Below, in pieces: positions 14 to 62,295 of a stretch of 64,000 nucleotides of DNA. Position 1 is the stretch's first letter. Each line of letters begins with the position of its first letter. The translations under genes were made by a program, and so were the position numbers. Source of the stretch: Octopus sinensis (lineage: Eukaryota); assembly GCF_006345805.1 (NCBI RefSeq), contig NC_043001.1:36952001-37016000 (forward strand), given 5' to 3'. The notes below the pieces were generated by a model. That model was not told the DNA's origin. It saw nothing but the letters and a program-made list of their open reading frames with translations, and ran no database searches.

Positions 14-331
14 ATGATGTCACACAGCGAAGATACCAAGAGGCCTGTCAAGGCAAATCTAATTGGATCGAACAGTAAAAATAGTAAGAGAAAGAGGAAT
101 GAAAGCTACTCCAACTACATCTATAAGGTTATGAAACAGAACCATCCCGATACTGGAATATCCAAAAAGAACCCGTGACTATCATAAACGGTTTTGTTAA
201 TGACTTGTTCGAGAGAATCGCCGAAAGCCAGTCACTTGGCTCACTACAGCAAACGTTCGACCATCAGTAGTCGAGAGATTCTTACTGCTGTCTGACTTTT
301 GCTTTCTGACCAATTTGTCAAACATGCAATA
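14..331 (+). pseudogene. H2B: Histone H2B pseudogene (two frameshifts, one premature stop, 3' truncated)
   Basis: Manual translation from ATG 14 gives [52 protein letters not shown]. After a frameshift near 175 it reads IINGFVNDLFERIAE, and after one near 226 [34 protein letters not shown]. This matches the H2B core. TGA at 293 sits where the Arg (CGA) of TAVRLLL is expected. Confidence 0.88.
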
Positions 332-2813: not shown

Positions 2814-3228
2814 GGCGCAGGAGTGGCTGTGTGGTAAGTAGCTTGCTTACCAACCACATGGTTCCAGGGTCAGTCCCACTGCGTGGCACCTTGGGCAAGT
2901 GCCTTCTACTATACGCTCGGGCCGACCAAAGCCTTGTGAGTGTATTTGGTTGACGGAAGCTTAAAGAAGCCTGTCGTATGTATATATGTGTGTATGTGTG
3001 TGTTTGCGTGTGTATATGTTTATGTGTCTGTGTCTGTCCCCCAACATCACTTGACAACCGATGCTGGTGTGTTTACGTCCCCGTAACTTAGCGGTTCGAC
3101 AAAAGAGACAGATAGAATAAGTACTAGGCTCACAAAGAATAAGCCCTGTGGTCGATTTCTTCGACTAAGGATGGTGCTCAAGCATGGCCACAGTCAAATG
3201 ATTGAAACAAGTAAAATATTCAAAGAGT
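2814..3228 (+). mobile_element. SINE family A
   Basis: Same head, body and tail as 1923-2386. Confidence 0.9.
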
Positions 3229-3239
3229 ATTCATATATA

Positions 3240-4915
3240 TATATATATATATATATAACGGGAAGGTTTACGAAAATAAACAAAAGACGAAGGCAGATGG
3301 AGTTCAAACAAACAATTGTATTAGTATGGCGCTCAGGAATAGAAGTAAAACAAGTCTTTTACGTTTCGAGCCTACGCTCTTCAACAGAAAGATACACAGA
3401 AAAGAAACAAGGAGAGAAACAAGGAGAGAAAAAGAAAAAAAATGCGTGCAGGAGCTAACGATTGAACATGGAGTTCTGATTTCAGCCAGAAGTCAGAGAT
3501 CAGGCGTTAGACGCTAGAGGGATAGTAGGAGAGATAACAGGGTCAAGTGACCTCGCCCCAACATAAGGGTGCATGTGTGTATAAGAGAGTATGTATGTGC
3601 GTATGAAAGGTCTGGACGTGTGTATGTATGTATGTATGATGTGATGTGTAATGTCGTATGGTGTAGTGTAGTGTAGTGTAGTGTGGTGTGATGTTGTGGG
3701 GAGGTGGGGGCGAGAGTGTGGAAAGCCCATGTGGGGTGTGTGTTTGGCTGGGGGTTGGGGTAGAGTGGGGGTTGTGGGGAGAGTGAAAGGGGGAGAGAAG
3801 AGAGAGAAGGGAAGAGAGATGATGGGGAGGTGAGAGAGGAGATTAGGGGAGAGGGGAGGAGGAGGGAAGAGAGATGAGGGGGAGGGGAGAGAGGAGATGA
3901 GAGGGCAGAAGGAAGGTGAAGAGGAGGGGGATGGGAAAAGAGGGGAAAGGAGGATGAGGGTAGGGGGAGAGAAGGGGAGCGAGGGAGCAGAGAGAAAGAG
4001 AGAAGAAGAAAGAGGGAAGAAGAAGAGGGAAGAAGGGAAGAGGAGGGAAAGAGAGTAGGGGTGAAAAGATGAAGGACTGAAGAGAAGTAGGAGTCGGGGG
4101 GAGGTTAGATGAAAAGAGGGGGAGAGTTGAGACCAAATGGCGTAAAAGAGCGAAGAGTGAAGGTTAATTCCTGTTCACGGCGCAAACGGGAATCCGGATG
4201 GCCTCTGTGCAAGGACAATCCGAACACAGACAGATGTTGCAAGGAGTGACCGGTGGAGCGGAAATGGCGTGAGACCGGTGTGTCATTGGCAAGGCGGATG
4301 TCACGGAGGTGTTCCGCGAACCGGTCAGCCAAGCGGCGTCCCGTTTGTCCGATGTACAGGGAATGGCAGAGAGAGCAGGAGATGCAATAGATGATATTGC
4401 TGGAGGTGCAGGTGAAGGAGTTGATGATGCGATAGGGTCGATGATGGGTGCCAGTGAGGAGGGTGGTGTTGGAGAGGTAAGGACAAGTGCGGCAACGTGG
4501 GCGGGAGCAGGGGAACGAGCCAGGTTGGGAGGTAGGGTCAGGGAAGAAGCTGTGGACCAAGAGGTTATGGTCTCGTTTGAAGGAGGTGAGGGGTCAGTTA
4601 GGGAAGAGGTGGGAAGTGGACGGGTCGGACTGGAGATGCCGGAAAGCTCGAAGAATGGTGCGTTGGAGAAGTAGGGTCGTGGAGTGGTAAGTGAGGGGAA
4701 AAGGGAGGCGGGAGACTACAGGGCAGGTTCGGGGGGAGAGGGCAGATGCACGGTCTACGGAACGTGCTCTGGCAAGGGCGGTGTGGATAGTGGTGAGGGG
4801 GTATCCACGTAGGATGAAGTGGCGAGCCATGAGTTGAGACTGAGTCTCAAAGTCATGGTCGTCACTACAGAGCCTACGTAGACAGAGGAATTGGGAATAG
4901 GGGTATATATATACA
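3240..4915 (-). mobile_element. 5'-truncated Penelope-like retroelement: RT C-terminus, GIY-YIG endonuclease, CT-rich 3' region and pLTR with hammerhead-like motif
   Basis: ORF 4105-4560 contains FPCSRPRCRTC...FTCTSSNIIYCISCSLCHSLYIGQTGRRLADRFAEH...RLRREQELTFTLRSFTPFGLN. Upstream is YPYSQFLCLRRLCSDDHDFETQSQLMARHFILRGYP, the typical PLE post-RT segment. Confidence 0.9.
3355..3392 (-). ncRNA. Minimal type I hammerhead-like motif in the PLE 3' end
   Basis: UCUUU-CUGUUGA-A-GAGC(GUAG)GCUC-GAAA-CGU-A-AAAGA. Stem I is 5 bp, stem II 4 bp, stem III is the palindrome ACGU. Core has A6U. Confidence 0.65.
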
Positions 4916-5370
4916 CTTCGTTCTTTTTTTAAGTCCATCAGATGTTGAGGTACATCTTCTCTCCACCAGACTTCACGAAAGCTTTGAACATTGTTCAAAG
5001 CTTTAGTGAAGACTTATGGAGAACAGAGATGCCTCGACATCTGATGGACTTTAAAAACGACATCGCTGATGGAGCAGAATATATGACATGTCATCGTAGC
5101 AATGCATATGCAAATTCTAGCTGTCAGGTGATGAGGATTTCTCATTAACATCATTTTGGTTTTAATGAAACACTGTACAGTATTTAAATGACATTTGATC
5201 AACTATTTTATTGGTACTATAAAAGAATTCTTTTAAAATAATGCAAGCTATAAAAATGAATAATACGCTGCAGCGTACACAAAAATCTCCCATGTGTTGA
5301 TTTTATAGCATACGTGCTTACACTAATAAAAAAGAAAGTGTAATTTTTATGGTACGAATATATGAATATA

Positions 5371-5585: not shown

Positions 5586-7910
5586 AAAAAAAATATATAT
5601 ATTACGTAAATACACACATACACACATGCAAATACATACAGTATACACGGCACACACACACATTCACATATATATGTACACATACACACATATGAACATC
5701 GATGTCATAGAATGATATTTAAACTAAAACTGGAAAGCTCCAACTTAATAACTCAATCATTTCTAAAAGCATAACACATTAATTCACTTTTTACTTCGGA
5801 AAATGACATGTATGCACATGCAACTTTTTTCTTTTTTTACTTTGACTAAAAACATTGATTCTGTTAGCTATGTACCCACAAGCGTCTTCGCTCACCAACA
5901 AATACTGTACCAACCTCACCACATTTTTTTTATGTCAGAGTTGCTTTACTGTCCTTTGTTAACTCTCCAATGTGTATACATGTACAATTCATATGTGTGT
6001 GTCTTTGTATGTTAAATCACAAACCCGTGCGCTGCTAACATGTGATCCAGTATAAACTGTATTCATGGTTGTGGGGGAGAGTACTGACTAAACTTGTCAG
6101 GAATGCCAAGTGAGGAATTCACTAGAAATCAAACAAGAGAAATTGTGGTTGAGCGTATCTGTTAATATTAAGTAAGTTTTAATAAAAGAGTACAACTTGT
6201 TAAAAACAAAACAATCAACAGCCGCTCATCTTAAATCCAAAGATGGATCTGCTTTAATCGGGGATTCTGGAGGTATTCTGTAAAGATTGGTAGAGAGTTC
6301 ACAACTGTTTTTTCATAATCCATCCCCTATAGATGAGAAAGTCATAGAAAGCTTATTGCAGTATCATGTTATTTAAAAAATGGATAAGGATTCTAATATA
6401 CATGTCAAAATTGCCATTAGACAAGTCAACTAAGGGAAAATCTCAAGAACTTAGGGATACCTGATATTTACCTTTGTTTATCTCCAATAAAATACATTCT
6501 ATGCCCGTATTGTATAAATAACATGTAACTTTAAGGGTACTTTCACCATATGTAAATTAGCGTGACCACTACCTAAATTCATGTACTTAACATGACTTTC
6601 AACAAGACAGGATATATTTCTGTGTATTTAGATATTTGAAAAAAGCAATTTGTTTTTATGATATCTTAGCTTGATTAAAAGACTTTATTGCTTTCATGAG
6701 ACCAATAAAAATATTTTAACAGGTCTGGTGTCATAAAATATTATTAGGGGCATATGAAGAAAAAATGAAGATTTTTTTATTCAATTTAAGCTATAAAATT
6801 AGCTAATTTCGTTGTAGGTTTCTGTTCAATAAGGTAAGTGTAGCCTGTGTAACTAAATAGACAAGTAGTGACAAGATGTGGAAACAAATGAAGAATAAAT
6901 AAAATACTTGCTGTGTCAGTATAGAAAAATGGACATTAAAAAATATACTAAAATGAACTGCAGGGTGTTAGCTTAAACAGAAGCGCTATTCTATAAGGGA
7001 GGAGTATGCTTGTACAGATGTATATAAAGATCAGCTATGCTGGAACCTTCATTAAAAGCTCCTACACAATCTAGCAGAAAAGAGGAAAGTCACGGCAATA
7101 TTGTAAAAGGCACAGAAATAGAAAAATAACAAATCTCAGCAGTTTGATCCCAGCATATTTCCACCTTCAGCCAAAATCAGTATGTTAACTTTTACTTATA
7201 TCTGAGTTCAACTTTAGTTATGCAAAATGTTTTTTCATAGCAATTCATTAAAAACCTTTGCATTTCCTTCATTTCATTCAGTGATGTAACAACAAAACAA
7301 TACAAAAAAAAATTGTATGAAATTTGAAAGAAAATACAAAACAAAATCAGTAACTGAAGATTCTAGATTATGTAACTATTTCATTTTATAGTTTAACATT
7401 ATCTAAATTACAAATATATCATTCTTTTTTGAAACAGTGGATCTTGAACCACATAAAGCCACAAATATTTCCATACAAATATTATGCCAAAAGAAAAAAA
7501 ACCTCTTGCATAGTAAAAGTCAACAGCTACCCAAGGGATATGAACTTACGTATCCTGTATGTATGACAAGGCTTCAGCCACAGGCGTTCTTTGACCTTTC
7601 CCATCAAAATGGGTCTTCCAGCGATTATCTATAGCTCTATGCCCTCAGATCCACTCTTCCAAAAAAAGAATTATTTCACACCTCTTGTAAGTTTATAAAA
7701 TTCTTATAATATCAACAAAATATATAATTGTTTATAATATGTAATTGAAAAGTAATTTTATTGTTTTTAGTTACATAACAGCTATATGTTCATTCCATTT
7801 TCCTAAGAAATAATATCTAAATATTTTGTTGATTTTTAATGTGTTATAGAAATTATATACATACATACATGCATACGCGTGTGTGTGTGTGTGCGTTTAT
7901 ATATATATTA

Positions 7911-8288
7911 CTCTTTTACTTGTTTCAGTCATTTGACTGCGGCCATGCTGGAGCACCGCCTTTAGTCGAGCAAATCGACCCCAGCACATATTCTTTGTAA
8001 GCCTAGTACTTATTCTATCGGTCTCTTTTGCCGAACCGCTAAGTTACGGGGACGTAAACAAACCTGCATCGTTTGTCAAGCGAAGTTGGGAGGACAAACA
8101 CACACACACACATACATATATATATACGACAGGCTTCTTTCAGTTTCCGTCTACCAAATCCACTCACAAGGCTTTGGTCGACGCGAGGCTATCGTAGATG
8201 ACACATGCCCAATGTGCCACGCTGTGGGACTGAATCCGGAACCATGTCGTGGGTAAGCAAGCTACTTACCACACAGCCAGTCCTGCGA
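7911..8288 (-). mobile_element. SINE family A
   Basis: Reverse-complement copy with full head and tail. Confidence 0.88.
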
Positions 8289-8555
8289 CTTTTCATTTCC
8301 AGTTTACTGGATGGTAGTTTTCAAGCATTTATATATAATTTGTATAGCTCATTGAAAATGAAATAAATAATATGTGTTGTTAAGAAGTCAGCACCTTAGT
8401 TGTATGGTTTGGGATTCAGTTTCATTGTTTGGTACTTTGCACAAAGTCTTTTTTTCTACAGCATAACAAACTGCGTTCATAGCGATATAGCAAGGTCAGA
8501 TGATTACATCTGTAATAATCTAAGATTTTTCAATTACCTAAAAATATTGGTGTAT

Positions 8556-8718
8556 GGAGTGGCTGTGTGGTAAGTAGCTTGCTAACCAACCACATGGTTC
8601 TGGGTTCAGTCCCACTGCGTGGTATCTTGAGCAAGTGTCTTCTGCTATAGCCCCGGGCTGACCAAAGCCTTGTGAGTGGATTTGGTAGACAGAAACTGAA
8701 AGAAGCCTATCGTATATA

Positions 8719-8775
<57 letters not shown>

Positions 8776-9000
8776 GTGTTGTGTTTGTGTGTCTGTGTTT
8801 GTCCCCCTAGCATTGCTTGACAACCGACGCTGGTGTGTTTACGTCCCCGTCACTTAGCGGTTCGGCAAAAGAGACCGATAGAATTAGTACTGGGCTTACA
8901 AAGAATAAGTCCTGGGGTCGATTTGCTCGACTAAAGGCGGTGCTCCAGCATGGCCGCAGTCAAATGACTGAAACAAGTAAAAGAGTAAAGAGTAAAGAGT
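8556..9000 (+). mobile_element. SINE family A
   Basis: Full copy with (TA)n core and GTAAAAGAGTAAAGAGT tail. Confidence 0.9.
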
Positions 9001-10053
9001 ATGAAGCCAAACATTTGATGATGTTGGAAATTTTCCTTCTTTAACTTGTAGGTAACAAATTATAAATTCAATAAATACAAATTATGTCACAGATGCAAAA
9101 GCAATGTACACACAGCAACAAACAAAATCAACTTCAGCCAAATACACTCAGTGTATTGATAAAACCTGACTGAAAAACTGAACTGCAAAAGTTGCAAAGA
9201 TCAGTGGTTCTGCCAGTTTATAGAGCTTTTCATTTCTAGTTTACTGAACGGTAGTTTTCAAGCATTTAACCCACAACCACTACTATGTGAACAGCAATCA
9301 GTATTGACAATGGTAGCACTTATTAAGAGAAATGTGTGGAAAGGGTCATCTGAAGTGGAAATCTCAGCCGAAATGTTGGAAGTAGAGGTGACAGCAGGAA
9401 TATGTAGGTGAAAGTTACTCACTGGTTGTCAATACATAAGAGATAAAAATATGAACATATATACTTTTATTTTTAGCAAACGCCAGCAAGAATACCAAAA
9501 TTGACGGCAATCATTGACGTGACAGTAATACTATTTTTTTTTCTTGTTTATTTTCTGATGCAAGTAAAGAATGTTATTCAAAGTCACTTTGTTAAAACCA
9601 TCAGTTTTCTTTTCATTATTAATTTTTATTGCTTTTTAACTTTTTTAATATTTTTCTTATTGCAGAGAAACAGGACTTCTCATTAAATCTTCATTTCTAC
9701 TAAATATCTTACACCTCAACTTCAGATCCATGTTAAGTGAAAAAATATTGTGTTGGAGATATCCACATGGTATTTATAACAATAATTATCATTATATATT
9801 ATATATATATATATATAATATATATATATATGTTATGTAATAAGTCCCTTCATTTCCTAATAGCAGAGGTGTCTGTAAACAACCTTTTGACATGAAATGT
9901 TACGTTAATAAAAAACATATACCACAGAACATGAATAAATTTTTATCTTTCTGCTTGAATAATTTAGATTGATGTACATGTAGTAGTTATTTAATGATAG
10001 TAAAATATATACATTTCTTTTGTAAATCTTTCCAGTTCTTATCAAAATACAAC

Positions 10054-10329
10054 ATGAAGCAGTATTTGAGAAATTACTTAATAATTGCTGCCTTCTGTTG
10101 TATTGGAGTGATACTGTCTGCAGAATCTTCAGAAGTTGAAAGAAATCGTGCTGTTGAATCTCAAAACTATGCATTTATGGACAAACCAAATGGATACCAA
10201 CGCCGAATGCTACCCCATCTTTTACGAATTCGAAGAGACTTTGGATTTAATTTCAAGGAGCCTGAATATGAGCAAGTATGTGGACCATATAAAGTATCAG
10301 ATGCCTTGTCTGCTGAGCGAACTCCATGA
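10054..10329 (+). CDS. Putative secreted prepropeptide, 91 aa, unknown family (neuropeptide-, venom- or defence-peptide-like architecture)
   Basis: MKQYLRNYLIIAAFCCIGVILSA (basic n-region plus hydrophobic h-region) / ESSEVERNRAVESQNYAFMDKPNGYQRR / MLPHLLRIRR / DFGFNFKEPEYEQVCGPYKVSDALSAERTP*. A pyrimidine-rich acceptor ...TCTTTCCAG ends at 10035, the start context is AACATG, and AATAAA is at 10416-10421. The sequence is non-repetitive. Confidence 0.7.
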   Translation: MKQYLRNYLIIAAFCCIGVILSAESSEVERNRAVESQNYAFMDKPNGYQRRMLPHLLRIRRDFGFNFKEPEYEQVCGPYKVSDALSAERTP

Positions 10330-10415
10330 AAATGCAAATTTTTAACGAATTGCCCATAGTCGTGTATCTCGTATTTCTTCAAATGATACACTTGAATTTA
10401 ATATTTACAATTAAA

Positions 10416-10421
10416 AATAAA
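10416..10421 (+). terminator. Polyadenylation signal AATAAA of the putative peptide gene
   Basis: 87 nt after the stop, preceded by ATTAAA. Confidence 0.5.
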
Positions 10422-10546
10422 GTTACTATAGCTCTATATAAAGATTTGTTTTATTATTCTTACAGTGAATGTAAAGCTAGGTTCTTAATTATTTATGTTA
10501 TTATCGGTATAAAGGCGCAAACAGTTGCATACTTAAGACTGCTGTA

Positions 10547-10756
10547 GACGCAGGCATGGATGTGGGGTTAAACAGCTTGCTTCCCAACAGTGGGGTTTTG
10601 AGTTCAGTCCCACTACAGGGCATCTTGGGCAAGCGTCTTCTTCTATAGCCCATGGCCAGCCAAAGCCTTGTGAGTGGATTTCGTACATAGAAACTGAAAA
10701 CTCATTGTATACATATGTATACATACGAGTGTGTGTATGTGTGTGTTTGTGTGTGT

Positions 10757-18337: not shown

Positions 18338-18474
18338 AACTACATTAGCTGGTAAATGTTTTTAATTTTCTTTCCCTTCGTGAATTTATCCCTAATTAGT
18401 GTTGTTTACTGCTCTTTCTAGCACAAGGCTTTCCTATGATGGAAGCCTCTTGATGTGTCTTAATGTACACGATA

Positions 18475-28303: not shown

Positions 28304-28349
<46 letters not shown>

Positions 28350-28350
<1 letters not shown>

Positions 28351-28547
28351 CTCTTTTACTTGTTTCAGTCATTTGACTGCGGCCATGCTGGAGCACCGCC
28401 TTTTTAGTCGAGAAAATCAACCCCACGCCTTATTCTTTGTAAGCCTAGTACTTATTCTTTTGCCGAACCGCTAATTAACGGGAACGTAAACACACCAGCA
28501 TCGGTTGTCAAGCGATGTTGGGGGGTGGGTCAAACACACACACACAT

Positions 28548-28578
<31 letters not shown>

Positions 28579-28735
28579 CGACAGGCTTCTTTCAGTTTCC
28601 GTCCGCCAAATCCACTCACAAGGCTTTGGTCGGCCCGAGGCTATAGTAGAAGACACTATCCCAAGATACCAAGCAGTGGAACTGAACCCGGAACCGTGTG
28701 GTTGGTAAGCAGGCTACTTACCACACAGCCACTCA
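28350..28735 (-). mobile_element. SINE family A
   Basis: Reverse-complement copy. Confidence 0.88.
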
Positions 28736-29013: not shown

Positions 29014-29185
29014 AGGCGCAGGAGTGGCTGTGTGGTAAGTAGCTTGCTTACTAACCACATGGTTCCGGGTTCAGTCCCACTGCGTGGCACTTTGGGCAAG
29101 TGTCTTCTACTATAGCCTCGGGCCGACCAAAGCCTTGTGAGTGGATTTGGTAGACGGAAATTGAAGGAAGCCTGTCGTGTATAAG

Positions 29186-29241
<56 letters not shown>

Positions 29242-29471
29242 TGTGTCTGTGTGTCTGTGTTTGTCCCCCCAAAATCGCTTGACAACCGATGCTGGTGTGT
29301 TCATGTCCCCGTAACTTAGCGGTTCGGCAAAAGAGACCGATAGAATAAGTACTAGGCTTACAAAAAATAAGTTCTGGCGTCGATTTGCTCGACTAAAAGC
29401 GGTGCTCCAGCATGGCTGCAGTCAAATGACTGAAACAAGTAAAAGAAAGAAAGAAAGAAAGAAAGAAAGAA
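29014..29471 (+). mobile_element. SINE family A
   Basis: Full copy with an (AAAG)n tail. Confidence 0.9.
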
Positions 29472-34294: not shown

Positions 34295-35292
34295 TTGGGT
34301 TGGCAACTAAGTTCCCGCCGTTTTTTTTTTTAAATTTGGAATTTATTGCGTTTTTAAATTTTGGTTCTATTTTGTTTTTTCGAGAATTCTATTTTTGAAT
34401 CATTTTGGAAATCTTTTTTTTTCAAGTTAATTTTAGTTAATTTTTGTTTATTTTCAGATCATTAAAATGGAATGTCAAGTGAAAAACAAGCATTTTCGAC
34501 ACCCCCTTCTTTTGCTTTTAATCAAGGTTCTAAAGCCGCAAAAGCTGCCCGCAACATGTGTGCTGTGTATGAAGAGGGTGCCATAGCTGAAAGAACCGCT
34601 CGTGATTGGTATGCCAAGACGCATTGGTATCAAAGACGCACCTCGTTCTGGCCATCCAGTTGTGTTCGATGAAGAGCAATTAACCAACATTTGCATGAAA
34701 ATTCTCGTCAAACAACAAGGGAACTGGCAGAGAAAATGGAATGCTCCCACACTGTTACAGAGAAGCATCTTCACTTGATGGGAAAAGTTCAGAAGTATGG
34801 AGCATGGGTTCCGCATGCTTTAAGTGACAACAGCAAAAATCAACGAGCTACAATCTCCGCTGGTTTGCTTGCTCGTCACCGCTCAACTCAAGGACACAAG
34901 CAACGATTTCTTTACCGAATCGTTACTAGCGACGAAAAACGGTGCTTGTATGTCAATATGAAGCAGCGTAAGGAATGGCTTAGCCCCAGTAAACAAGCGA
35001 CACCGTGCGTGAAACAAGATCTTCATCCGCCTAAAACGATGTTGTGCATATGATGGGACTGGGAAGGGATTACCCACTTACGAATTGCTTGCACAGAACC
35101 AAACGGTCAACAGATGGAACGACTCAACACGGCTATTCAAGAGAAAAGACCTAATCGGCAGATGGAGTTCTGCTGCATGACAACGCCCGCTCTCATATCG
35201 ACAATATGACCAAGGAAGCCATTCAAACTCATGGGTGGGAAGCGCTGCCACCCACGCCGTACTCTCCTGACTTGGCACCAACAGATTTCCAC
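34295..35292 (+). mobile_element. Mariner (DD34D) transposon, decayed and 3'-truncated
   Basis: TA followed by TIR-like TTGGGTTGGCAACTAAG. ATG 34467 gives MECQVKNKHFRHPLLFAFNQGSKAAKAARNMCAVYEEGAIAERTARDWYAK. Motifs WVPHAL, IVTSDEK, HDNARSH and PPYSPDLAPTDFH are present. Confidence 0.92.
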
Positions 35293-39268: not shown

Positions 39269-40094
39269 TACATATATATATGCATAGGTATATGTATCTG
39301 TGTGTGTGTAAGTGTGTGTGCGTGCATGTATGTATATTGTTACAAAGTACTCCGGTTTCCACATAATCTATACATACTCTCGTATACGCGGACAAATTCG
39401 CATCAACACATACACACACGCACATAGACCCTCTGCACTTAAATACTTCCCTTTCATGCGTAAAAACATATATACCTACTGACAAGGAACACTTATACAA
39501 AGGCACGCGCACACACATATATAGACTACGAGCACTTATGCATGTGTATCTAATTTGGTTTTGTACCCATTTTTACATAGGTTTATATATATATATATAC
39601 CTCCATATACGTTAACATCATAATACGCACGCACACACATATATATATATATATATAAACCTACATAATCTAATGCACTTATATGCATATACTCGTACAA
39701 CACACGTTTATATGTATTGATGCATTACCCGAGTCATACATTCAAACATTCCCTTTTACTGAAATCGCGTAACTAACTTCATCCAATAAACGCATCAATT
39801 CTTCTTTCCCTGCTGGTCAACGGATTCCACCTTCAATCCGGATGTGATTACAATAACTGACCTATGACTTCAGCGTCTTGAATCTGTTCCAGGCGAATCT
39901 GAGCTCGTCTTTCCTCTCTTGGCGTGTTTCCGCAAATCATTTCCCCTGCTCACTAAAATGTCATTTATCAATTTAATTTTTATCTACTTTTAATCGTTCT
40001 CATCCTGGTCTTAGGATTACGTTATTGCGGGATGGACCATGTCTAGCCAAAAATGATCACGACTGTTCAATGAAGAGATAAACAGACAGTCCTC

Positions 40095-40141
40095 TCTCTA
40101 TCTATCTATCTATCTTTCTCTATCTATCTATCTATCTATCT

Positions 40142-40180
<39 letters not shown>

Positions 40181-48080: not shown

Positions 48081-48508
48081 TCTTTTACTCTTTTTTACTC
48101 TTTTACTCTTTTACTTGTTTCAGTCCTTTGACTGTGGCCATGCTGGAGCACCGCCTTTAGTCGAGCAAAATCGACCCCAGGCATATTCTTTGTAAGCCAG
48201 TACTTATTCTATCGTCTCTTTGCCGAACCGCAAAGTGACGGGAACGTAAACACACCAGCATCGGTTGTCAAGCAATGCTAGGGGACAAAAACACAGACAA
48301 ACAAACACATACACACCACATATATAAACATATATATACATATATACGACAGGCTTCTTTCAGTTCCGTCTACCAAATCCACTCACAAGGCATTGGTCGC
48401 CGGGGCTATATAGCAGAAGACACTGCCTAAGATGCCACGCAGTGGGACTGAACCGGAACCATGTGATTGGTTAGCAAGCTACTTACTAACAGCCACTCCT
48501 GCGCCTAT
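48081..48508 (-). mobile_element. SINE family A
   Basis: Reverse-complement copy with (TCTTTTAC)n tail. Confidence 0.88.
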
Positions 48509-54936: not shown

Positions 54937-55095
54937 TAGGAGTGGCTGTGTGGTAAGTAGCTTGCTTACCAACCACATGATTCCAGGTTCAGTCCCACTG
55001 CGTGGCACCTTGGGCAAGTGTCTTCTACTATAGCCTCGGGCCGACCAAAGCCTTGTGAGTGAATTTGGTAGACGGAAATTGAAAGAAGCCCGTCG

Positions 55096-55129
<34 letters not shown>

Positions 55130-55336
55130 GTGTGTGTGTGTGTTTGTGTGTCTGTGTTTGTCCCCACAACATCGCTTGACAACCGATGGGGGTGTGTTTA
55201 CGTCCCCGTAACTTAGCGGTCCGGCAAAAGAGAACGATAGCATAAGTACTAGGCTTACAAAGAATAAATCCTGGGGGTCGATTTGCTCGACTAAAGGCGG
55301 TGCTCCAGCATGGCCACAGTCAAATGACTGAAACAA
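54937..55336 (+). mobile_element. SINE family A
   Basis: Full copy. Confidence 0.9.
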
Positions 55337-55819
55337 GTAAAAGAATAAAAGAGTAAATAACAATACTTCATGAATTCAATCAGATTTTTGTTCCTTTGCT
55401 GTTCGAATTTTTCTTGACACATTCTTTTAGGAAGAACATGGGATTATTTTCTCGAATTCCTTTTTCTAGAATAAAATCAAATATGCCTTTTTCAGAGATC
55501 AAAGTTGTTGCTCTTCAACTTAGTTATTCAACTTTAATTTTAATTAGTTCCCTTGACGATGCAACCGCGGTGTCAACAGCGTTAAATTTATTGTTTGAAA
55601 AGTCGAGCGAACATAATTTTTGCAATACAGCTTTTAAGAAACAAAAAATTACAATGACATTGCAGATAAACTATTCCAGCACAATATCATTAATTAATTA
55701 CAATTCATGAATATGCTCTCCTTTAGCAAATTTCTGAAGTATTTCACTTCTTTAAAATAGAAACCTACGAAATGACCTGGCAGTTATGTTCAATTTTTAA
55801 TAATATTGTCATTCTTTAA

Positions 55820-57689: not shown

Positions 57690-58405
57690 CAACGCTTACT
57701 CGACCGCTACAACGATGAGGAAGAAGCATTTATGGAGAGAATAGTCACAGGAGGAGATAGTGTCCATCATTTTGACCCCAAATTCAAAAGGTAGTGTAAG
57801 GAATGGAAACACTCGGAATCGCAAGCAAAAAGAAATTTAGTCCAAACCTTCAACAGAAAATGTGATGCTTATTGTTTTGAGGGGCGCAAAAGGACCTATA
57901 CTGAAACATTACCTAGGAAGGGGGTCTACACTCAGCAGTGTAGGTTATAGTGAAATGCTGGCCAACAAACTGAAACCAGCAATTCGCACCTAACGCCAAG
58001 GTCTATTGTCAAAGCAAGTGTTATTGTTGCACGACAATACACGCTAACATACAGCCACCTACACCGTTGAAACCATTGAAAAATCGGGTTTCTGGCTATT
58101 GGAATGCCCTGCGTACAGATCAGACTTCGCCTCTTCCGACTATCACCTCTTTGAACCGCTCGAAACATCCGCTACGGGGTCATAGATTTGCTATGGATGA
58201 AGAAATGCAGGATGCGGTGTATGAATGGCTGCGCGACCAGCCGAAAACATTCTTCTCCGATGGATAAGCAAGCTTGTGGACCGCCGGAAGAAGTGCATCG
58301 AAAATCTACGAGACTTTGACGAAAATTCTGTAATTGTTCAACCTTTGCTTTTGTTTTAATAAATTACAGAAACAAGAGTGCATATAAATTTCGACTAACA
58401 CCTGT
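57690..58405 (+). mobile_element. Decayed mariner (DD34D), 3' half
   Basis: RLLDRYNDEEEAFMERIVTGG...HHFDPK; LLLHDNTR*HTA...ECPAYRSDFASSDYHLFEPL (D-34-D); RGHRFAMDEEMQDAVYEWLRDQPKTFFSDG. Confidence 0.88.
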
Positions 58406-61133: not shown

Positions 61134-62295
61134 GGGTCATCCCATAAATAATGAGGTTTTGAATGAAAATAGCCCAACTAGACATTTTTTTTTTCAGAAA
61201 ATGAAGGGTAATGATTCATATTAAGCATACATTGAGAATATAGTTAACAGAAAACCATAATAATACTATCACATTTATTGACATAATGAATTATTTAGCA
61301 AAATGAGCGCCAAGGAAGAAACAATTCAATTGTGGGACCTCCAGGAGTGTGACAGCTAGGGATTTAAGGAATATTGGCCGCACGTAACGTGGGAAACCAG
61401 GACAAACAAGCAAAGCCATTCTCACCTCCTCCAGACTTCCTCGGGTACCGAAAAGCACCTGAAATCGAACCCTCAACACCATGGCTTCCGTGCGAGAACC
61501 CCCGAAACTGGCTCTTCACAAGAGTTTGAGGCTTCAATGAGCCCAAAAGTACATTACATTAGACTTGAGTTATGTTCTGTTCACTGACGAAACCAAGGCG
61601 ACCCTTGACGAACCTGATGGTTGGGCAAATGGTTGAGTCTATTTCGTAGACAAGCATCACCAACGTTTACGACGTCAAAAACAGGGTGGAGTCATATTCT
61701 GGGCTGGTATCATTGGGGACGGACTTGTTGGCCCAGTCAGGGTGCCTGAAGAGGTTAGAGTGACCACAGCCGCCTACTGCAATCTCCTGAAGGAGGTCTT
61801 GGATCCCTGGCTAGATGACATGCTACTGTTGCTTCTAAAGAATTTCGTATTTATGCATGACAACGCTCCTTCCCACTCTGCTAGGACCACCCATATATTC
61901 CTAGGGTCTTACGGCATACAAGGTTAAAATTTGATGGTGTGGCCGCTAGCATCTCCGGATCTCAACCCTATCGAAAATCAAGATGTTATGCCGATGGACG
62001 CCAATTTACGTCGATAGATTCTTATGGGCGACCATCAAAGCTGTAGCAGAGGCAGCCCAACCTGCTACTATTAAGAAATTGAGAGTTTCCATGAATAATA
62101 GGGTTTTTGAAGTTATCCGTCGAAATGGCGCTCATGTGGCTAAATAATTCATTATGTCAATAAATGTTATAATATTATTATGGTTTTCTGTTAAATATAT
62201 ACTCAATGTATGCTTGATATGCATTATTACCCTTCATTTTCTGGAGAGAAAAAATGTCCAGATGGGCTATTTTCATTCAAAAGCTATAAAGTGTA
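61134..62295 (+). mobile_element. Tc1-like DD37E (TRT-type) transposon, internally deleted, with about 145-bp TIRs
   Basis: 61157-61299 is inverted at 62139-62282. Protein reads VLFTDETKATLDEPDGWANG..GGVIFWAGIIGDGLVGPVRV..FMHDNAPSH...VWPLASPDLNPIEN, with 37 residues between the second D and E. Confidence 0.88.

Follow-up and report, generated by a model that had tools for sequence, protein, structure and literature searches.

A predicted hormone-less paralogue of the NKY-2 precursor gene in Octopus sinensis

The question raised by this locus is where a small, apparently secreted peptide precursor of the octopus comes from and which products it may still release. The window, that is, the whole 64,000-nucleotide stretch analysed here, is 100% identical to Octopus sinensis CM016863.1 from 36,952,001 and carries on its plus strand the gene LOC118763463, which we call gene a; a second short paralogue, on O. 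vulgaris OX597818.1, is called gene b. The preliminary description of this stretch had recognised a prepropeptide gene at this place, could not match it to any precursor known to its author, and took it for an orphan. We consider gene a to be a divergent paralogue within the precursor family of NKY-2 (lophotrochozoan neuropeptide KY). It is a hormone-less member of a known neuropeptide family that we did not find in the literature searched: no published sequence of it came up there, and databases label it only 'uncharacterized' or 'hypothetical'. In our reading, to which we give a probability of roughly 0.6, gene a encodes a secreted, convertase-processed, NKY-2-derived propeptide that would be unable to signal as NKY, and its function, if any, would lie in the N-terminal peptide.

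Anatomy of gene a and its homology to NKY-2 precursors

The anatomy of gene a, including its untranslated regions (UTRs), is as follows; L003 denotes a third short-type copy, described below.

7609..7686, plus strand: 3' part of the 5' exon in the O. sinensis Gnomon model, ending at a consensus donor, TCTT^GTAAGT, with GT at 7687-7688
7687..10035, plus strand: intron of 2349 nucleotides, with a polypyrimidine tract and then AG at 10034-10035
10036..10053, plus strand: 5'UTR part of exon 2, 18 nucleotides, TTCTTATCAAAATACAAC, near-invariant in all paralogues (identity between a and b, 94%)
10054..10329, plus strand: coding sequence of the short NKY-2-family paralogue a, 91 codons and TGA (10327-10329), uninterrupted
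10054..10122, plus strand: predicted signal peptide, residues 1-23, MKQYLRNYLIIAAFCCIGVILSA, the best-conserved protein segment of the family
10123..10206, plus strand: N-terminal pro-peptide ESSEVERNRAVESQNYAFMDKPNGYQ (residues 24-49) and R50-R51, the most conserved part after the signal
10207..10236, plus strand: linker MLPHLLRI (residues 52-59) and R60-R61, aligned to RTQR of NKY-2
10237..10326, plus strand: C-terminal 30-residue peptide DFGFNFKEPEYEQVCGPYKVSDALSAERTP, with one Cys, hyper-divergent, in the position of NKY in NKY-2
10330..10440, plus strand: 3'UTR, with AATAAA at 10416-10421; blocks and hexamer kept in a, b, the L003 copy and NKY-2

The product of the window gene is MKQYLRNYLIIAAFCCIGVILSAESSEVERNRAVESQNYAFMDKPNGYQRRMLPHLLRIRRDFGFNFKEPEYEQVCGPYKVSDALSAERTP, of 91 residues. 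The C-terminal 97 residues of the database model XP_036359008.1 match the window at 100% identity, and its residues 1-26 map to 7609-7686, also at 100% identity (tblastn). The acceptor reads ...tctttccAG^TTCTTATC, and exon 2 begins at 10036, 18 nucleotides 5' of the ATG at 10054. Two independent gene models, XP_036359008.1 and CAI9722653.1, use this junction (10035^10036), which bears out the splice acceptor first proposed. The N-terminus is signal-like in its n/h/c layout, in its hydropathy and in its homology to NKY-2 signals, and the database models put ATGs upstream of it: an n-region MKQYLRN (net charge +2) is followed by a 14-residue hydrophobic core, YLIIAAFCCIGVIL, with a mean Kyte-Doolittle value of 2.8, and then by LSA^E. 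The remainder of the product after the signal is acidic, with basic sites at R50-R51 and R58-I-R-R61. The signal-like start, the acidic pro-segment, the RR and RIRR sites and AATAAA were all found where the preliminary description had placed them.

The window (36% GC, rich in microsatellites) holds 30 ATG-initiated open reading frames (ORFs) of at least 91 residues, most of them microsatellite-driven, and therefore the length of the gene a ORF alone is unremarkable. Of the 200 ATG starts that give at least 60 residues, gene a alone passed a crude screen that asked for normal complexity, a dibasic site and a signal-like start. The earlier view of a gene-like unit encoding a secretory prepropeptide is supported. 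In the databases, the window ORF forms the C-terminal 91 residues of the 123-residue O. sinensis model XP_036359008.1 ('uncharacterized protein LOC118763463'), and it is 96% identical to O. vulgaris CAI9722653.1 (121 residues) and 76% identical to O. bimaculoides A0A0L8HDN1 (91 residues). The ORF is intact in both of these octopods, and its conservation in related species is supported. No family was assigned to the ORF or its orthologues by a Pfam scan, in which the one match, Sigma_reg_N on the artefactual N-terminal extension of the protein P0001, was sub-threshold, and a PDB profile search with gene a found nothing meaningful.

Relatives were sought by one exhaustive and two word-indexed profile searches. 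Octopod relatives were found in Argonauta hians (GAB1602875.1), O. vulgaris (CAI9722525-7) and O. bimaculoides (A0A0L8HY72/HY98), together with several Logan and ENA contigs. These relatives, of 112 residues, share the signal and the pro-segment and then continue as ...RTQR(G/E)LKR-EPNWIWMPSHGYVPVPEPSN...RGSTILRYG-stop, and they carry KR-EPNWIWMPSHGYVPVP...STILRYG. This C-terminal sequence agrees with the published core consensus of NKY-2, G[YF]WIWMPAQG (PMC6425005), and with the end LLRY-NH2 of the Crassostrea gigas NKY peptide, GGIWIWMPAQGYVSVP...NLLRY-NH2 (bioRxiv 10.1101/712687); the core motif of NKY-1 is FW[RQ]P[LM]G[YG] (PMC6425005). Two distant matches, P0012 and P0013, bear the exact G[YF]WIWMPAQG core.

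An hhalign comparison of the short-paralogue clade with the NKY-2 clade gave a probability of 99.1% and an E-value of 1.1e-18 over residues 1-63, and pairwise BLASTP against P0010 gave 2e-14. In the maximum-likelihood tree, the short clade (a, b and the L003 copy) has support of 99/96 and is nested among the octopod NKY-2 genes; clade a (O. sinensis, O. vulgaris and O. bimaculoides) has support of 95/94, and clade b (O. vulgaris and the species of Logan contig L002) of 95/91. The branches of NKY-2 are near zero, whereas those of the short clade are 0.1-1.0; the latter are 10-50 times longer. The orphan label is withdrawn, as a match to an already described family, that of the NKY-2 precursors, has been found. 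Two candidate relatives were set aside. The repetitive ENA proteins P0007 and P0009 (1252 and 1595 residues; profile positions 39-68, E 5.6e-6) were judged to show a resemblance of basic, proline-rich repeats, and contig L002 was rejected as an orthologue of gene a, since the tree places it with paralogue b.

On the one hand, gene a has kept much of the NKY-2 plan. It has the same exon plan (a 5' exon and one coding exon, with the acceptor 18 nucleotides before the ATG), a predicted signal peptide homologous to the NKY-2 pattern MKQY[LF]..QLII..FCCIGVILS, and a pro-segment homologous to A[VL].S..[NY]A[FL]M..P[NS]GYQ.R, which aligns to ...AAVATRDNALMAPPSGYQGR. Its basic site R60-R61 aligns to RTQR of NKY-2, its 3'UTR and poly(A) signal are similar, and it lies on the chromosome of the NKY-2 cluster. 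R60-R61 is kept in all short copies and R61 is invariant throughout the family, whereas RR50-51 is conserved in a and b only and occurs neither in the L003 copy nor in NKY-2.

On the other hand, gene a has lost what defines the hormone. The region aligned to the NKY core (G[YF]WIWMP[AS][QH]G in NKY-2, FW[RQ]P[LM]G[YG] in NKY-1) reads FKEPEYEQVCGPY and contains no Trp. The RY-Gly amidation end is missing, as the product ends in ...SAERTP-stop compared with ...ILRYG-stop in NKY-2. The KR that precedes the C-terminal peptide of about 35-43 residues in NKY-2 aligns to K69-E70 (FK^EP) in gene a; RIRR61, the nearest basic site, lies 8 residues upstream of this position, and the peptide has 30 residues. 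The 12-residue block DKNLLSLITRAA of NKY-2 precursors is also absent, the product has 91 residues compared with 112, its C-terminal peptide holds one Cys, and gene a evolves 10-50 times faster than NKY-2.

Sequence blocks in the 3'UTR (window 10330-10440; columns ~545-700 of alignment A3), among them TTTCTC.T..TTCTT.CAATGACACA and AAAAATAAA.TTAC, are common to the short paralogues and to NKY-2 of Octopus and Argonauta. Their conservation exceeds that of the C-terminal coding region and suggests a shared post-transcriptional element.

The NKY-2 cluster and the origin of the short paralogues

In O. vulgaris, the NKY-2 cluster occupies 24.23-24.38 Mb of OX597818.1, in the order NKY-2A, b, NKY-2 pseudogene, NKY-2B and Selenoprotein S, the last on the opposite strand. 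The adjacency of NKY-2 and Selenoprotein S is common to O. vulgaris and Argonauta. The members are given here by their coordinates in our loci L008 and L010.

L008:44283-44621: NKY-2A, O. vulgaris OX597818.1
L010:10001-10264: short paralogue b, 87 residues, O. vulgaris OX597818.1, about 24,315,291
L010:28702-28920: NKY-2 pseudogene, between b and NKY-2B, with in-frame TAG and TGA
L010:40062-40148 and L010:65257-65595: exons 1 and 2 of NKY-2B

Gene a of O. vulgaris lies on the same chromosome at 31.25 Mb, 7 Mb from the cluster. A search for paralogues, as the preliminary description had advised, was productive, yielding b, NKY-2A, NKY-2B and the NKY-2 pseudogene on OX597818.1; no further paralogue was found within the 64-kb window or in the 10 kb that flank the O. 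vulgaris and Argonauta loci on each side. The pseudogene reads ATGAAGCCTTATTTCAGCAGGTAG... and keeps the acceptor, 3'UTR-like sequence and AATAAT.

The matching stretches of the a and b loci are window 7170-7870 and 9188-10726, which correspond to L010 6000-6667 and 9174-10630. The duplicated unit comprises the 5' exon region with its donor, most of the intron and the 3' flank, and as judged from these alignments the a/b duplication was DNA-based. Paralogue b resembles a in its truncated architecture, its RR and RIRR sites and its single Cys. It differs from a in that it lies inside the NKY-2 cluster, is 64% identical at the protein level and has a partly unalignable C-terminal peptide, and its signal and pro-segment are demonstrably constrained, unlike those of a. 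An alignment of the C-terminal regions of the two genes at the DNA level requires several indels. A shared GGA(T)CCA (window 10270-10300 and L010:10205-10245) is read in different frames in the two genes, and the only Cys codon precedes it in a but follows it in b, at non-homologous nucleotides. This frame change and the shift of the Cys point to a compensated frameshift in which one Cys was retained or re-created.

In the course of events that we propose, an octopod NKY-2 precursor gene would have been duplicated at the DNA level to give the two-exon gene a (7609-10440, plus strand), and its NKY-encoding segment would have been reshaped through substitutions, indels that kept the frame and one or more compensated frameshifts. 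A third short-type gene is represented by L003-L005 (Logan SRR11869384/385/391). It is of octopod origin, encodes 82 residues (...KYRRAMKQVDDDDERKEYYYVSDPFPNF) and is basal to a and b; its L003 copy has neither the RR50-51 site nor the Cys.

Logan contig L007 (SRR16213285) represents a spliced mRNA of NKY-2B, whose colinearity with the genome begins at the site homologous to window 10036; its upstream part is the annotated exon 1 of NKY-2B up to a GTAAGT donor. Accordingly, the acceptor of gene a is an inherited, functional feature of the family. The assignment of L007 to Argonauta was considered and rejected, as it is an Octopus-like NKY-2B mRNA, 94.8% identical to L008.

Two stored gene models of the cluster call for comment. 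The gene call P0008 (212 residues; L007:130-768) reads through an in-frame TAG at about nucleotide 217; the true NKY-2B ORF in L007 begins at nucleotide 430, and exon 1 still has in-frame upstream ATGs. The O. vulgaris model CAI9722527.1 (209 residues) is a chimera of L010:10001-10201, 40062-40148 and 65239-65595, in which residues 1-63 come from paralogue b and are joined to both exons of NKY-2B; the model reflects either a read-through transcript or an error of gene prediction.

Constraint, coding status and alternative explanations

The rates of evolution differ between the NKY-2 genes and their short paralogues. The ratio of non-synonymous to synonymous divergence (dN/dS) was calculated by the method of Nei and Gojobori; comparisons of O. 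sinensis with L002 are paralogue (a and b) comparisons.

NKY-2 pairs: dN/dS 0.10-0.18
a and b: dN/dS 0.85-0.96
b orthologues: dN/dS 1.48 overall and 1.87 at the C-terminus
Gene a, the very close pair O. sinensis and O. vulgaris only: dN/dS about 1 (4 non-synonymous changes and 1 synonymous)
a and b, identity: intron 86.2%, signal 88.4%, pro-segment 84.2%, C-terminus 55.1%, 3'UTR 80.9% (81%)
b orthologues (b_Ovul and L002), identity: intron 85.8%, signal 98.6%, pro-segment 93.0%, C-terminus 76.9%

ORFs are intact for a in three species, for b in two and for the L003 copy. Although the product of gene a shows 24% amino-acid divergence among O. sinensis, O. vulgaris and O. bimaculoides, the ORF has 91 residues and zero indels in all three. 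Of the 19 indels between a and b in the non-coding flanks, 15 have lengths that cannot be divided by 3, whereas both indels in the coding sequence are multiples of 3; the chance of no frameshift in the coding sequence is about P = 0.027. When substitution was simulated at the observed divergence, an ATG-initiated open frame survived in 3-10% of trials, and the joint neutral probability of ORF retention is about 1e-3. In contrast to gene a, the true NKY-2 pseudogene of the cluster has gained stops. Because the ORF is retained across species, we regard gene a as truly protein-coding. The constraint on the signal and the N-terminal pro-peptide we take to be weak to moderate; it is clear in b but cannot be demonstrated in a. 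Compared with non-coding DNA, the b orthologues have accumulated fewer changes in the signal and pro-segment (p=5e-4) and more in the C-terminus (p=0.04); between a and b, divergence is faster in the C-terminal 30 codons than in the intron (Fisher p=5e-10). We read the C-terminal peptide of the short paralogues as evolving at or above the neutral rate.

Several observations weigh against a secreted, processed and functional product of gene a, and we gather them here. The dN/dS between a and b is what neutral drift would give, and the value of about 1 within gene a points the same way. The signal and pro-segment of a and b (84-88%) are no more conserved than the intron (86%), with most of the changes on the a lineage. 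No transcript-derived copy of gene a was found in the sparse protein collection searched. An AlphaFold2 model built on a 7-sequence alignment is of low confidence (mean predicted local distance difference test score, 56.6), with a confident helix only at the signal. XP_036359008.1 and CAI9722653.1 place in-frame ATGs upstream of MKQ, and the 'exon 1' of CAI9722653.1 is window 14-85, the start of a frameshifted histone H2B pseudogene. Finally, O. vulgaris gene a is without window 7599-8577, which includes the exon-1 donor used in O. sinensis.

The neutral-like rates, the missing transcript and the deleted donor region would also be expected if gene a were a non-functional NKY-2 copy in neutral drift, whose ORF survives by chance and through its short length. 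All NKY-defining motifs are gone, the C-terminus has been scrambled by indels and a frameshift, and the family does yield pseudogenes, all of which suits such a decaying duplicate. However, a decaying copy accounts poorly for an indel-free ORF in three species and for in-frame coding indels at the low joint probability given above, and the start context, the acceptor, the poly(A) signal and R60-R61 are all conserved, while the sister paralogue b has significant constraint on its signal and pro-segment. We consider decay unlikely, although it is an explanation to be taken seriously.

A second explanation starts from the divergent C-terminus. The NKY-2 duplicates may be secreted outside the nervous system (in the salivary or venom gland, skin, reproductive tract or immune cells), with the diversifying C-terminal peptide as the active part. 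The signal and UTRs are conserved whereas the mature-region codons are hyper-divergent (55% compared with 86% for the intron between a and b, and 77% compared with 86% between b orthologues), the C-terminal dN/dS reaches 1.87 in the b orthologues, and a single Cys is kept in a and b at non-homologous nucleotides. In a 2026 preprint, octopus venom glands are reported to express 27 superfamilies of short secreted proteins of unknown function (bioRxiv 10.64898/2026.02.02.703354). The same preprint, however, queried its data with NKY and reported no NKY-like toxin. Moreover, the dN/dS above 1 rests on 15 compared with 2 changes and is not significant, dS is raised in the same region, part of the excess divergence reflects indels and mis-alignment and not substitution, and there are just two short copies and no large tandem array.

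Neuropeptide-derived venom peptides, namely the C-superfamily and consomatins of cone snails, which derive from a somatostatin-related gene, and the 'doppelganger' toxins of octopuses, likewise combine conserved signal and UTRs with a hyper-divergent mature region and an origin from a duplicated hormone gene (10.64898/2026.02.02.703354). Unlike them, gene a has lost the canonical hormone motif instead of mimicking it, and only two copies exist; the octopus SF1 toxins are said to be unrelated to endogenous neuropeptide genes (10.64898/2026.02.02.703354). Overall, recruitment as an exocrine peptide seems to us doubtful. The same low degree of belief applies to the broader proposal of a 'headless' NKY-2 precursor clade (a, b and the L003 type), in which the hormone would have been replaced by a hypervariable, Cys-containing effector peptide under diversifying selection.

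A third explanation concerns the start of translation. Gene a may be the terminal exon of a longer protein that starts in an upstream exon, and the hydrophobic stretch would then be an internal signal-anchor that is not cleaved. The 123- and 121-residue models keep the frame open from their upstream ATGs through FLSKYN into MKQ, the 18 nucleotides before the ATG are highly conserved, and the NKY-2B contig L007 also has in-frame upstream ATGs. However, the upstream exons of the two models are unrelated, one of them being part of the H2B pseudogene, and both N-terminal extensions lack conservation. At the paralogue b locus of O. vulgaris, the donor and flank of the O. sinensis exon 1 are conserved but its ATG is absent, and that exon is deleted in O. 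vulgaris gene a. The O. bimaculoides and Argonauta models begin at MKQ, and non-cephalopod NKY-2 precursors have N-terminal signal peptides. Since the upstream exons of the two models are not conserved, MKQ is taken as the conserved translation start, and we regard a longer protein as very improbable. The preliminary description had placed the whole 91-codon coding sequence in one exon. This holds if translation starts at MKQ, as conservation indicates, and only then, as both longer database models add upstream exons.

The H2B pseudogene lies at window 14-~300 on the plus strand (PDB H2B match, E 4e-18) and has an in-frame TGA at 173-175, followed by frameshifts. The use of its first ~72 nucleotides as coding exon 1 in CAI9722653.1 is probably an annotation artefact. 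The gap in O. vulgaris gene a measures ~980 bp and is located at L001:~18415-18417; it concerns an ancestral stretch, shared with the b locus, and its break abuts a repeat at 8578 that resembles a short interspersed nuclear element (SINE). It could be a real deletion with an effect on how gene a is expressed, or else a difference between assemblies or haplotypes.

A true orphan, a de novo gene or a transposon-derived ORF, which the lack of a Pfam match, of a PDB relative and of any database name might suggest, is refuted by the clear homology to NKY-2 precursors (hhalign, BLASTP and tree) and by flanks that are single-copy and paralogous to the b locus and not to repeats, and a transposon origin of gene a was rejected, the transposon-like ORFs lying elsewhere in the window.

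No further host-gene exon was recognised in the window. Transposon debris lies at 4108-5013 (minus strand), 34673-35050 (plus), 57974-58264 (plus) and 61637-61924 (plus). One of these stretches is an ORF with a GIY-YIG domain (sub-threshold Pfam match, E 1e-3), another a Transposase_1 fragment of the mariner type (E 2.5e-5); the remaining two look mariner-like by eye only and have no Pfam match. SINE-like repeats of ~400 bp are present at 2842-3229, 7908-8290, 8578-8970, 28344-28711, 29043-29446, 48094-48478 and 54961-55357. Their copies are 78-90% identical to one another, each is followed by a microsatellite, and they are the source of many long spurious ORFs (...VYQIHSQGFG...).

Candidate products of gene a and their meaning

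In the reading that we prefer, the gene a protein would enter the secretory pathway and its signal would be removed after A23. Prohormone convertases would then cut at R50R51 and RIRR61, releasing an acidic N-terminal peptide of 26 residues, which is conserved, a short linker and a fast-evolving, Cys-containing C-terminal peptide of 30 residues. The product could not be expected to serve as an NKY or RYamide ligand. The C-terminal peptide may be either freely drifting or under diversifying selection, and any retained function would most probably reside in the conserved N-terminal peptide.

The preliminary description had proposed MLPHLLRI and the 30-residue C-terminal peptide as the products. 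These turn out to be the least conserved parts, and the first RR is absent in the L003 copy and in NKY-2. Between O. sinensis and O. bimaculoides, residues 52-57 of gene a differ at 6 of 6 positions and the C-terminal peptide at 13 of 30. As far as conservation can tell, the best-conserved candidate product of gene a is the N-terminal peptide ESSEVERNRAVESQNYAFMDKPNGYQ, whose counterpart hardly varies among the NKY-2 precursors of cephalopods and can be recognised in one from outside the cephalopods (…SLLAPPSIYKSK…). According to work on the oyster, the bioactivity of such intervening precursor sequences is unknown (PMC4200219).

NKY is among the few neuropeptide families common to all mollusc classes, and its receptor and function are unsettled. 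For the databases, our results provide corrections with respect to an H2B pseudogene used as an exon, a chimeric model of b and NKY-2B, and N-terminal extensions that are not conserved. Compared with the literature searched, three findings are new. The small NKY-2 gene cluster of octopuses comprises two copies that are conserved, one pseudogene and a pair of short paralogues; the short paralogues no longer encode the hormone but have kept the signal and the N-terminal pro-peptide; and the pro-peptide region of NKY-2 is conserved from bivalve-like precursors to cephalopods. This conservation of the pro-peptide indicates that the 'spacer' of the NKY-2 precursor may have a function of its own, and gene a represents a natural experiment in this respect, a precursor without its hormone. 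If the C-terminal peptides were expressed in exocrine tissue, the short paralogues would be a fresh case of hormone-gene recruitment, early and on a small scale, in cephalopods.

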